A DNA stretch of 63,409 bases, filler included, from Parasitella parasitica NRRL 2501 (lineage: Eukaryota; Fungi; Mucoromycota), in assembly GCA_025201805.1 (NCBI GenBank). It is 15 parts of 14 records of this genome, joined end to end, with 100 filler letters (N's around TTAATTAATTAA, not from the genome) between each part and the next. Parts side by side here need not be neighbours in the genome. Positions count along the whole stretch, not along the records: positions 1 to 2,284 come from MU619458.1; 14 more parts are not named here. One strand, 5' to 3'. This document shows positions 1 to 5,778 of this stretch, one piece after another. The position numbers were made by a program, and so were the translations under genes. Below the pieces are notes generated by a model that made no database searches, was not told where the DNA came from, and saw nothing but the letters and a program-made list of their open reading frames with translations. Each line of letters begins with the position of its first letter. The first letter of the stretch is position 1.

Positions 1-1498
1 TAATTAGCCGATGCTCCCGAATCAATCAACACCGAACAAACAGAACCATTCACCAAAGCACGACATAAAGGCAGTTTAGTATTAATTTCACCAGCATTTA
101 ATACAAACTGAACATCCTTTTGTATCATACAATCATCAATCAGTAGAGGTTCAACATAAGACTTTGAAGTAGGTAGTACACAATACAGGTAAAAGGAAGA
201 ATCAATGGCTTTATTTTCAGAAATATGATCATTATAATCATCAGAAACTTCACGCTCTTCCAAGAATGCTAATTGGGAGCGCTTTTCTGAAGGACAATCC
301 CTTTGAAAGTGCCCAAAACCTTCGCAATTATAACATTGTATATTGGTATGAGACGAACCACGACCACCAGAACTATTATCATTTCTAGCACTACAATTTG
401 GATGGCCACCATGGCCACACCATGACCACGAAGACCTTTGAATCCCCCACGGGAACCACCACGACCTCGGTAACCACTACGACCATGAGAACCACCACGA
501 CCAGACGAATGCCAAGAGCGCATGTAGTTAAGCAGCTCCTTGGACTCCGCGACTGACAAATCCATGGGATCATCCACCTGATAATCCATTCCAAGAGAAG
601 ATGCCTTCCGAACCGAAGATACACCATCTAAACGATTGCCTTCATAAATGTGCGCAGCCGGAATCACCTCGCTCAGGATCGGATTCTCCATGTCAACATG
701 ATCCTTGATACTGACTCTAGCTGCCGAGTCCTTCAAACCAGCATTAAATTTATCGACGGCTTCCTCATCCGTCATGCGTGGAATACTCAACTTGATGGTC
801 ATGAAGTCTTGTACGTATTGTGTAATAGTTGACAATTGCTTTAAGCTACGCATCCTGTCTCGTGCTACGGAAACCGAGTTATCAGGCTTAAAGTAAGCAC
901 GCAACTCCGTTTTTAGTTGTAACCAGTTATCCGGAGCAGAATTCAACAATCGCAGGTTTTGATACAATATTTTTGCGGCACCCGTAATAAGTAATGTTAC
1001 ACCCAATTTAGCTGACTTGATGTGATCGAGACTCTTGAGATCCGAGTAATAATCTATGGATATAATCCATGCTTCAATTGTGTGAGGATCTCTGGAACCA
1101 TCATATTTGCGAGGTTTTCCAACGAAATCAAAAGCATCATCTGTATGCTTCTTCGAAAGTATCACCTCTTTCAAAATTTCAGCGATTTTTAAGATATCAC
1201 TGTTGTTGCCTGCTTCACCAGCAGATAAAGATTCACCTTTGTTCATTTTGTTGTTGTTGAGTGATCCTGGTTCAAAAAATTTACGTGCCAATTCACTTGC
1301 TAACTTGTGCCAATGTTCTTCTCTTTTTATTGTTGATGTCAATCTTTCTTCTTTAGTAAATTGACCACTTTTTGTCTTTCTTAATTTGCTGTTATAATAA
1401 CCAATATCGTCTTGATATTTAAGTTGTTTGATGACCTTCTCTTCAATTTCAAATTGGTTTTTTAACTTCTTGAGGTCTTCTTCAGTTATATTTGACAT
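1..1498 (-). mobile_element. Ty3/gypsy gag-protease (frameshifted near 418, runs off the window edge)
   Basis: ORF 269..1498 has a retrotransposon Gag capsid region (PRKYDGSRD...ELRAYFKP...LKQLSTITQYVQDF) and an RGG tract. After a frame change near 418 my translation gives a CYNCEGFGHFQRDC zinc knuckle and the aspartic protease motif LIDSGASAN at the edge. Confidence 0.85.
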
Positions 1499-1540
1499 TC
1501 ACCAATCACTTGAATAAAATAAAAAAAACGATCAATTGGT

Positions 1541-1553
1541 TCAGATGCTACCA
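1541..1553 (-). promoter_or_regulatory. Primer-binding site (TGGTAGCATC, initiator tRNA-Met type)
   Basis: TGGTAGC lies 2 nt inside the LTR end on the gag strand; complementary to a ...GCUACCA tRNA 3' end. Confidence 0.7.
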
Positions 1554-1555
1554 AA

Positions 1556-1709
1556 TGTCGTGTGCAGATAAATATGTTTTAGAGTAGATTTATGAGGAAG
1601 TATGTAAAATGTTATATATGAGATAAAAGATACCTTTATTATTTTAAGATACAATTGATATTTATATACTAATTAAAATGGTTACACACAAGTCTGTGAG
1701 CAACTGACA
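1556..1709 (-). repeat. 5' LTR, family A (154 bp)
   Basis: TG...CA termini (TGTCG/TGACA on +), adjacent PBS, near-identical interrupted copy at 20916-22734. Confidence 0.85.
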
Positions 1710-1747
1710 CGCTAAACACACTACATCTGCAAAAAATGTAAAAAGAA

Positions 1748-1831
1748 TCCGGTTTACAAGATTCGAACTAGTGACCTAGAGATGTCGATTTTCACTACAG
1801 TCTCCCGCTCTACCAACTGAGCTAAAACCGG
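1748..1831 (-). tRNA. tRNA-Tyr(GTA) with ~11-nt intron
   Basis: Minus strand CCGGTTT-TAGCTCAGTTGGTAGAGC-GGGAGA-CTGTAG[tgaaaatcgac]A-TCTCT-AGGTC-ACTAG-TTCGAAT-CTTGT-AAACCGG-A folds as a cloverleaf; one T-T mismatch in the T-stem. Confidence 0.9.
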
Positions 1832-2276
1832 AAGGGTTGTAGAATGTCTCAGTCGGTAGAGCGTTCAACGGAATGCGCTGAGCAAGCCTTAATATACCTA
1901 AGGACGTTGGTTCGAATCCCACCTTCTCCCCTTTCCGTGAATCTACCTCACATGAATCGCTACTCACACCACGTTCCATCGGTATGATCAAGCTTGTTTA
2001 GGCGTGCTGCGGTTCGTCTAGCCGGCAATGGCCCAGTGTCTAGTTCGCTTTCCCCCGTCTTGCGGGTAAGGTCTTACCATAGTCTCTCTCACTTGTCTCC
2101 CATTTCGCATTTGGGTTTTAATGCCGTTCTGATTATGGGTCCAGTACCCCTCACAGCTCCCCAACTAACCAATAATCAAAAATATGCTTTTCCCCATCGT
2201 ATCCTCATAGTATAGCAATTAATGACCAAATCTGTCGCATGCATTAAATACTAATAAAAATCAAATAAGTTTTCGC
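1832..2276 (+). mobile_element. tRNA-derived SINE (~445 bp)
   Basis: A-box-like TGTCTCAGTCGG (1845-1856) and B box GGTTCGAATCC (1909-1919), no valid cloverleaf, unique body, 3' tail homologous to 37545-37615, followed by CTGAGCTA (2277-2284) repeating 1817-1824. Confidence 0.75.
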
Positions 2277-2284
2277 CTGAGCTA

Positions 2285-4141: not shown

Positions 4142-5778
4142 ATGTTTGAAAACTTTTTATTTAAAATAGTTTTATTTATGATACTAATGTCTGAACCAGG
4201 GTCCACTTTTCCTATGATACGGGTATCATTAATAAGCAAAGGAGTTATTAGATTAAATTCATTTTTTCTTTTTGCAATTGTAGACTTACAATCTTTGTCT
4301 TCCATAGCCTCTCGGAAGAGGTTGCTTTCATTAGCAGAGCCGGAACTCCTGCTTTTGCCGTTGCGGGAACGACGACGTTTGCCCTGACCATTGGGGCGAT
4401 TTTGGTAGGGATGTGATCCAGACGACTGGACAGAATTGACCTTGAAGGATGCCTTCATGGCCAGATACTCGGGGCATTCGTGGCCATGGAACCAGGTCTT
4501 ACCACACCACTTACAGAAGGTGTTTCCAGAAGCCTTCTTCGGTACGTTTGACCTATCAACACGTCTTGAGGTTGATGCTCCCTTATTTAATCGACAATCC
4601 TTTTCGTTGTGGCGAGCTTGAGCACCACCATGATTCGAGCAAAAGAAACTAGTAGGTGACGAGCCAGCAGGGGAGGAGAATCCAGCTGTGGACGATTTTG
4701 GAGAAACACCGCCGCCACGAGAAGCACCACCTTTCTTGATGCTGATGAATGAAATAGGGCACTTTTGTCCATTGAGTATGTTGAGAGCGCACGTTACGAT
4801 TTGATTTGCTGTGAAATCAGATTGGCCAGGATATTGGGCACAGAGAACCGAATTGATTTGAATCTGCCACGAGGCAGGAAAACCCAAAAGAAAAGTATCA
4901 CCCAATGTGGTATCCTCAGAAGAATATCCGGCTTCGAGCATGGCACGAGCAAAGCGATTGTAGTATTCTTCTGTCGTTTCTCCAGGTTTCATGGTAGCGG
5001 TTTGTACCTCTCGACGAGCATCCAATCTTAAGGCAGCATTATTAAATTTCTTTGTAAACAGGTCCTTTGCAGCAGACCAAGTACCAGCCTTCAACAACTC
5101 TTGGTTCAACCACAAATCCAAATCGTACGGAATGGTTAACGGAATGTACCGACGCCAAACATCTTCAACAGATTTGCCAGATGACAGGATAACCTTCTCG
5201 AAGGACCTCAAAAAATGGTGGATGGAATCATATGTCAATTCGTTTGGAAAGTACTTGGTTGCACTTGAACGCAATTGGAACTTTGGAAGGTCTTGCTTGG
5301 ACAGAGAAATTCCTTCATTGTCTCCAGACAATGCAGAGGTAACATTTGCTTCAGATAGCTTGGCAGATGATTTTAATGTAAAGATTAACTTGTTCATCCC
5401 CTCGACTTTTGCACGCATTTCCGAAATATGATTTTGCCCTTGCTCGTTATCAAGATCAGTACCTTCAATCATGTCAATGAGCAACCCGATATATTGATCC
5501 CTCTGGTGCAATAACTTCTTTACAGCGTCAATTGGATTGGAGGAGACCATGGAGATGGAAGAAGTAATTGATGAGGCAGAGTCAGGAGCTGATATAACTG
5601 GGGGAGCCTGAGGCATGTCTTCGTCTTGAAGATTGAGGTGCACTTCGCGCATACCAATCTCCACTTGAGTCAGAGAAGGGTCACCGGCAATTCCAGGAGC
5701 AGAAATGGGAACGGTTGGCTGAAGTGGAGCTTCAACAGCAGAACCTTCGATAGGTGAGTTAGCACCAGGGACAGCAGC
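4142..5778 (-). mobile_element. Ty3/gypsy gag-protease (partial, open across the whole contig)
   Basis: Gag capsid-like region (MKPGETTEEYYNRF), Cys/His knuckles (CSNH..HNEKDC; CKWCGKTWFHGHEC), protease-like motif IIGKVDPGSDISII. Confidence 0.85.

Follow-up and report, generated by a model that had tools for sequence, protein, structure and literature searches.

The tRNA-Tyr locus and its adjoining unit

The window analysed here is a stretch of 63,409 nt, filler included, that was joined from 15 parts of the genome of Parasitella parasitica NRRL 2501. The locus under study lies in its first piece, positions 1-2284, which corresponds to G000:C222:8920-11203 of the genome assembly (32.8 Mb in 450 scaffolds). 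The piece contains an intact tRNA-Tyr gene with a T5 run 3 nt past its 3' end, and, on the opposite strand, a non-coding unit of 445 nt (1832-2276, plus strand), which begins at the base adjoining the tRNA +1 nucleotide at 1831 (Table 1). ARAGORN with default settings yielded zero tRNA calls over this piece, because it misses the tRNA-Tyr gene due to the intron; this result was set aside, as the gene is resolved both by Rfam and by the intron option of ARAGORN. A non-coding unit of about 445 bp with A and B boxes, starting near the tRNA-Tyr +1 nucleotide on the opposite strand, had been predicted from the sequence, and the analysis agrees with this description. The longest ORFs of the unit comprise 47-73 aa and have no Pfam match, the B box is perfect, and an A-box-like site precedes it.

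Directly after the unit follows the octamer CTGAGCTA, which is identical to positions 1817-1824, i.e., to the antisense of nt 15-8 of tRNA-Tyr, as had also been claimed. The contig break that had been noted behind it corresponds to about 1,230 N within scaffold C222, which start past position 2284. Eight of the about 15 bases of the expected target-site duplication are thus visible before the gap, and these eight represent a generic part of the A box that is common to most tRNAs, so that they cannot show a Tyr-derived flank. Beyond the gap lies the 3' part of an element with a tail of type A1 (see below), flanked by a fragment of another tRNA, which does not fit a simple nesting of elements.

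The other side of the tRNA-Tyr gene is occupied by an LTR-retrotransposon (1-1747, minus strand), which lies downstream of the gene in the same orientation. Its gag ORF (269-1498) matches PF03732, and a CCHC zinc knuckle is encoded in a different frame at about 294-335, which implies a frameshift inside gag; the protease motif DSGAS is cut off by the beginning of the contig. At a distance of 38 nt from the 3' end of the tRNA-Tyr gene lies an LTR-like stretch (1655-1710), of which further copies are present in L066 (98%) and in the related metagenome contig L068 (84%), where the copy lies about 75 nt downstream of another tRNA. The LTR-retrotransposon may represent a second, LTR-type tRNA-associated element. 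A match to SNORD46 (358-452, minus strand) was rejected, since it reached 23 bits compared to a gathering score of 40 (E 0.05), is situated inside the Gly/Arg-rich gag coding region, and is most likely due to chance.

Table 1. Features of the tRNA-Tyr gene and the adjoining unit, in window coordinates.
Feature	Position	Strand	Basis
tRNA-Tyr(GTA) with anticodon-loop intron	1748-1831	-	Rfam RF00005 57.4 bits, E 3e-11; ARAGORN -i, 11-nt intron
Expected target-site duplication, left copy (antisense of nt 15-1 of tRNA-Tyr), ctgagctaaaaccgg	1817-1831	+	Sequence; rule inferred from L050, L004, L030
Leader, 7 nt, from tRNA-Tyr +1 to the first base of the tRNA-like head	1832-1838	+	Sequence; head start from ARAGORN
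Degenerate tRNA-like head, 93 nt	1839-1931	+	ARAGORN cloverleaf only with threshold lowered to 90%
A-box-like site, 7/9 specified positions of TRGCNNAGTGG	1845-1855	+	Read from sequence
B box GGTTCGAATCC, perfect (10/10) versus GGTTCGANTCC	1909-1919	+	Read from sequence
Unique non-coding body	1932-2200	+	Single copy by BLAST, pattern, profile; no Rfam family
LINE-type 3' module (tail), 76 nt	2201-2276	+	Alignment, BLAST; best match of tail model
Three-tier hairpin conserved across LINE tail families	2208-2253	+	Comparative pair count; same fold predicted per tail
Junction motif CTGAGCTA, start of the expected right-hand copy (tRNA nt 15-8)	2277-2284	+	Sequence

The leader of the unit is compatible with a Pol III 5' leader as well as with extra bases of a LINE-type 5' junction; the 5' junctions of the partner LINEs, which are described below, show 0-3 extra bases. 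In the head the A and B boxes have a tRNA-like spacing, and the cloverleaf that ARAGORN predicts at the lowered threshold has five of seven acceptor pairs, a D stem of 3 bp, a long variable region, and four of five pairs in the T stem. The Rfam tRNA model did not report the head, even when the short stretch was searched alone, and the Rfam matches to tmRNA and tracrRNA that this search yielded were at chance level only and were dismissed. By minimum free energy, the head folds no better than shuffled sequences do (z = 0.23). None of the tRNA genes in the genome was retrieved by a pattern search with the 16-mer of the D arm and the B box, and a profile built from the head matched only the head itself. 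A metagenome scan with the flank of the B box retrieved only an unrelated long-arm tRNA, which shares the T arm and the 3' acceptor strand; this hints at the type of the head and does not represent a copy of it. Judged by its motifs, the head thus appears to derive from a tRNA, but it would be old or strongly modified. The body of about 270 nt is GC-richer than its flanks. Neither the body nor the head has similarity to the 5' UTR, the ORFs, or the 3' UTR of the partner LINEs. Three T4 runs are located between the head and the tail, one of them near 2116, and runs of T5 or longer are absent from the unit, in contrast to the T5 after the neighbouring tRNA-Tyr gene.

The partner LINE family, its insertion sites and its tails

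The 3' module of the unit belongs to a family of tails that are carried by LINEs with an AP endonuclease and a reverse transcriptase as well as by derivatives with ORF1 only. The full-length LINE at locus L050 has a length of about 4.9 kb and comprises a 5' UTR of about 190 nt, an ORF1 of 359 aa, and an ORF2 of 1119 aa, which encodes an AP endonuclease (PF03372/PF14529) and a reverse transcriptase (PF00078); no match to RNase H (PF00075) was found in this ORF2 by Pfam. The C-terminus of ORF2 has 33 matches in the genome. Among named sequences, the closest relatives of ORF2 come from Mucor velutinosus (88%), M. saturninus, and Rhizopus; an exact search with the element proteins gave no match.

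In the copies examined, the partner family inserts at the same nucleotide position in tRNA genes. The 5' end of the L050 LINE adjoins the +1 nucleotide of a tRNA gene head-to-head, and its 3' end is followed by a C and a perfect copy (14/14) of tRNA nt 14-1. At L004 a truncated copy of 75 bp is inserted at a tRNA-Lys(CTT) gene with the same 14/14 duplication, and the L030 copy has a duplication with a match of 14/15. Element 5' ends at tRNA +1 were found in L050, L030, L004, and L068. The neighbouring tRNAs are intact after LINE insertion and reach 65-68 bits with Rfam. That the unit had been placed by the same rule as these LINEs was part of the original prediction, and the L050, L004, and L030 LINEs indeed insert at tRNA +1 and duplicate the 5' end of the tRNA.

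The 3' flanks of the tails are equally uniform. All 22 distinct tails listed, together with further copies, are followed by CTGAGCYA and seven additional nucleotides, which are the antisense of tRNA nt 7-1, and therefore the presence of CTGAGCTA after the unit is not due to chance. Several different tRNAs are represented among these flanks, and CATCCCC is found at many junctions. One tail is flanked by CTGAGCCA, which matches a tRNA with GGCTCAG, and thus the CTGAGCYA stretch is derived from the target. The first C of the junction motif is not tRNA-derived at tRNA-Lys sites, and the motif is partly linked to the element. From the junctions and the duplications we infer that the first nick would occur within the A box (TAGCTCA|G), where it would separate nt 14 from nt 15 in the sense strand of the tRNA gene, and that the second nick would be placed at -1/+1. 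Nicks at these two sites would lead to a 14-bp duplication of tRNA nt 1-14, to an element that is arranged head-to-head at +1, and to an intact tRNA gene. As read from these junctions, the insertion rule holds for the LINEs and is well supported.

A tail of LINE type at the 3' end of the unit had been proposed on the basis of an alignment with a single derivative element, and the same tail family was recovered elsewhere in the genome. The local alignment score of the unit tail is 64, compared to 24 ± 4 for shuffled sequences, and BLAST alignments with the family tails have 71-76% identity over 64-88 nt (best E about 1e-8). Two short motifs of the tail occur 13 times each in the genome, compared to 0-1 times for the reversed control, and the respective loci match the unit over its last 76 bases or so only. 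The similarity of the unit to the LINEs ends abruptly at the position at which the truncated L004 copy begins. Four types of tails are present in the genome, which were designated A1, A2, B1, and B2, and the unit tail is a mosaic of them, with an A1-like outer stem, a B2-like core, and the B-type terminus TTTTCGC.

The tails share a hairpin with three tiers. In the hairpin alignment 97% of the cells are paired, compared to 20-39% with slid partners, and the support for the hairpin comes from this comparative count only, as the folds of single tails are weak by energy. Four pairs of the hairpin have compensatory changes, one of which, from U-A to C-G, is private to the unit. The unit tail has kept 12 of the 13 pairs in spite of diverged loops, and this conservation, together with the private compensatory change, argues that the tail has evolved under selection for the fold. 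A covariance model of the tail hairpin detects 36 sites in the genome, and the unit tail is the sole member of its variant. Thirteen of the sites were newly found with the model, and they include G000:C6:59137, C45:13575, C99:78015, C32:253630, C191:302, C9:117361, C122:71218, C21:48301, C21:51770, C48:35968, and C139:77799. The survey of tail types and junctions comprises the tails listed, and the 13 newly found model sites lie outside it.

Origin of the unit and comparison with known retroelements

The unit occupies the exact position and orientation at the tRNA-Tyr gene that the LINE rule specifies, and the junction motif follows its 3' end. Its copy number was addressed with several approaches. 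A single copy, which was one half of what the original prediction had listed as speaking against itself, is what BLAST of the unit returned from the 32.8-Mb assembly, and the head and this variant of the tail were likewise single copy each. Patterns of 29 nt and 33 nt from the unit, the latter taken from the body, with three mismatches allowed, retrieved no further copy from the assembly, and profiles of the body and the head retrieved no second one; the tail hairpin model with its 36 genome sites served as a positive control for the profile method. At the sensitivity of BLAST, patterns, and profiles, a source gene for the unit is absent from the assembly. The assembly has N gaps at many arrays of tRNAs and LINEs, and thus the copy number is a lower bound. 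In the related metagenome contig L068 the LINE rule is seen, and the unit is absent.

On balance, the evidence leans towards the view that the unit is a solitary SINE-like retro-insert, which was mobilised in trans by the local LINE machinery. An RNA of about 445 nt would be transcribed, with the internal A and B boxes probably serving as the promoter for Pol III, and it would contain a short leader, the decayed tRNA-like head, the unique body, and the 76-nt 3' module with the hairpin of the local LINE family. The LINE protein would take this RNA in trans for target-primed reverse transcription, and a single insertion at the tRNA-Tyr gene would result, which predicts that AAAACCGG directly follows CTGAGCTA. 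The unit would be either a dead-end copy of a source gene that has been lost or has not been assembled, or a newly born proto-SINE. The SINE-like character is supported by the facts that both ends of the unit obey the rule of the partner, that the hairpin has been kept, and that the unit has Pol III boxes, is short and non-coding, and is free of runs of T5 or longer. Points against this reading are the single copy with no source gene in the assembly, the generic nature of the eight visible duplication bases, the different tRNA fragment beyond the gap, and the failure of the Rfam tRNA model to report the head; in addition, Pol III could terminate at one of the three T4 runs before it reaches the tail. 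Because it is present in one copy, the unit is not a proven SINE family. Of the original proposal of a tRNA-derived SINE that homes to tRNA genes, the architecture, the placement, and the partner LINEs have thus stood, while the repeated family has not. It is unlikely that a living family of tRNA-headed SINEs exists that homes to the tRNA A box via the tail hairpin of a site-specific LINE, with the unit as its sole assembled copy and further copies in unassembled arrays or in sister Mucor strains.

The single copy also suits explanations without any SINE. One of them, which we regard as rather unlikely, is a one-off chimeric retrocopy, for which reverse transcription would have started on the 3' end of an RNA of the LINE lineage (76 nt) and would have switched template to one or two cellular RNAs, the last of which was pre-tRNA-like, so that a SINE gene never existed. 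The abrupt end of the LINE similarity at the start point of the truncated L004 copy is in agreement with such a switch, the short leader of the head resembles that of a primary Pol III transcript, and chimeras of LINE-1 with non-coding RNAs are documented (10.1101/2025.02.02.635956). However, the parents of the 270-nt body and of the head would be expected elsewhere in the genome, and neither patterns nor profiles found them. In addition, the head is far from any extant tRNA, and the tail copies no extant LINE tail, but is 71-76% identical, an A1/B2 mosaic, and carries a compensatory change. An old relic could be single copy as well, and the unit might stem from an extinct lineage of LINEs or LINE derivatives of the same superfamily, which was 5'-truncated or internally deleted and has retained a tRNA-like module by chance. 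Deletion derivatives are common, as is evident from the tail types A1, A2, B1, and B2 and from the ORF1-only derivatives of 2 kb, and the tail of the unit is intermediate between the types. Yet the head and the body are unlike any LINE 5' UTR, ORF, or 3' UTR, a perfect B box together with a well-spaced A box is unexpected in a LINE 3' UTR, and a random truncation would have hit a position 7 nt before the tRNA-like head by coincidence; we regard this origin as quite improbable.

The remaining explanation dispenses with a single insertion, and proposes a composite of a decayed divergent tRNA gene, a spacer, and an unrelated LINE tail of 76 nt, truncated, of which the tRNA target is hidden in the gap. 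The family rule would put the +1 nucleotide of the targeted tRNA directly to the left of a truncated tail, and no tRNA is present at 2120-2200 on either strand; furthermore, a pseudo-tRNA 7 nt from the +1 nucleotide of a divergent tRNA gene is without parallel among the other loci examined. We regard a composite as very unlikely, in spite of the existence of truncated tails of 76 nt (L004), the resemblance of the head to an old pseudo-tRNA, and the location in a cluster of tRNAs and transposons with rearranged arrays.

As a solitary SINE-like retro-insert, the unit can be compared to tRNA-derived SINEs (SINE2) of the stringent type, with which it has in common a Pol III head with A and B boxes, a body without coding capacity, and a 3' module that a LINE carries as well. 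Stringent SINEs carry the 3' tail of their partner LINE (Kajikawa and Okada, 2002, as cited in PMC4494074), and by analogy the 3' module of the unit is presumably recognised by the reverse transcriptase of the partner LINE. The unit differs from SINE2 elements in that it is single copy, has a head too decayed for tRNA models, lacks a simple-repeat or poly(A) end, and is inserted site-specifically. Inheritance of the target specificity of the partner by non-autonomous elements has been described for SINEU-3, which is mobilised by Tx1-Mar, and for the R2 SIDEs (PMC4494074; PMC3414825). Both are, like the unit, short non-autonomous retroelements at the exact site of the partner LINE, but they target a Mariner transposon or the 28S rDNA, whereas the unit is found at the A-box region of a tRNA gene and has a tRNA-like head of its own. 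Chimeric retrocopies of the U6/L1 type, in which a small Pol III RNA is joined to a LINE 3' end (10.1101/2025.02.02.635956), also combine a Pol III-type 5' part with a LINE 3' end in a single insertion. In contrast to them, the unit has a 270-nt non-LINE body in between, and a parent gene of its head and body is absent from the assembly.

For the partner LINEs, the closest parallels in targeting are found in dictyostelids, in which TRE5 elements insert about 50 bp and Dp_NLTR-A 2-6 bp upstream of tRNA genes (PMC5006619). They share with the partner LINE that they are APE-type non-LTR elements upstream of tRNA genes in a compact genome and leave the tRNA gene intact. However, the dictyostelid elements are directed by the Pol III transcription complex to a window of distances (2-6 or 31-98 bp), and in NLTR-A/B the RT is followed by an RNase H domain (PMC5006619), whereas the partner LINE has a fixed junction, a duplication of tRNA nt 1-14, no RNase H, and a host from the Mucorales. 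Since the protein search placed ORF2 with sequences from Mucor, TRE5 and NLTR-A are analogues of the partner LINE and not relatives. The conserved A-box region of many tRNA species also serves as a sequence-specific target for the Dada DNA transposons, which insert into tRNA genes with the target-site duplication TAGCTC from within the A box (PMC3706591). These DDE transposons generate duplications of 6-7 bp and split the gene, in contrast to the partner retroelement, with its 14-bp duplication that regenerates the gene. GremLINE1 of Mucor lusitanicus is, like the partner, a LINE of the Mucorales with APE and RT, but it is located at centromeres, its insertion sites are AT-rich, its duplications consist largely of A/T, and targeting of tRNAs has not been reported for it (10.1101/2022.12.01.518749). 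In the literature searched, a SINE was not reported for the Mucorales, nor was a tRNA-derived SINE that targets tRNA genes, which does not prove their absence. Likewise, a description of an A-box-specific LINE in the Mucorales was not found in the literature searched, which left Repbase reports and subscription journals outside, and here, too, absence is not proven.

The partner LINEs appear to cut the conserved A box of many tRNA species and yet to regenerate the gene via the 14-bp duplication. This would be a "safe harbour" strategy unlike the distance-based targeting of Ty3, TRE5, and NLTR-A, and from the rule the AP endonuclease is expected to be sequence-specific. The unit may show a SINE at its birth, or at a failed birth, with a Pol III-type head attached to the hairpin that serves for recognition in a stringent LINE. 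If further copies of the unit exist, the origin of its head and its target would be linked in one class of genes. As the unit is present in one copy, it is the LINE rule, and not the SINE, that gives the finding its weight.

Tandem arrays and derivative elements

Elements of the partner family were also often observed in tandem, separated only by a 15-nt fragment of a tRNA 5' end, at L036 (540-560) and at junctions of L008, L015, L032, L038, and L039. The same spacing is found at junctions of L048, L051, and L053-L063. The commonest fragment is CTGAGCTACATCCCC, and it is directly followed by the 5' end of the next element. Together with the terminal C of the element, the duplicated fragment rebuilds tRNA nt 1-15, and the fragment may itself have been targeted again; alternatively, the 15-nt fragment may be carried by transcripts as a 5' transduction.

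Non-autonomous derivatives of about 2 kb are located at L036 (556-2560) and L007/L030 (7028-8606), and they consist of a 5' UTR, an ORF1-like ORF, and a 3' UTR. The ORF1-like ORF has 351-388 aa, a coiled coil, and no Pfam match, and the tails are of type A1 or B2. At L030 (6473-7090, C23 copy), a C-terminal piece of ORF2 runs in frame into a repeated 5' region and an ORF1-like ORF, next to a gap of 78 N; either the element is chimeric or two tandem copies were collapsed during assembly. The full-length LINE of L068 is flanked by two different tRNA fragments (190-215 and 5024-5040), i.e., by GCCTTCTTGG on the 5' side and a tRNA-Lys-like fragment on the 3' side, which suggests recombination between copies or nested insertions.
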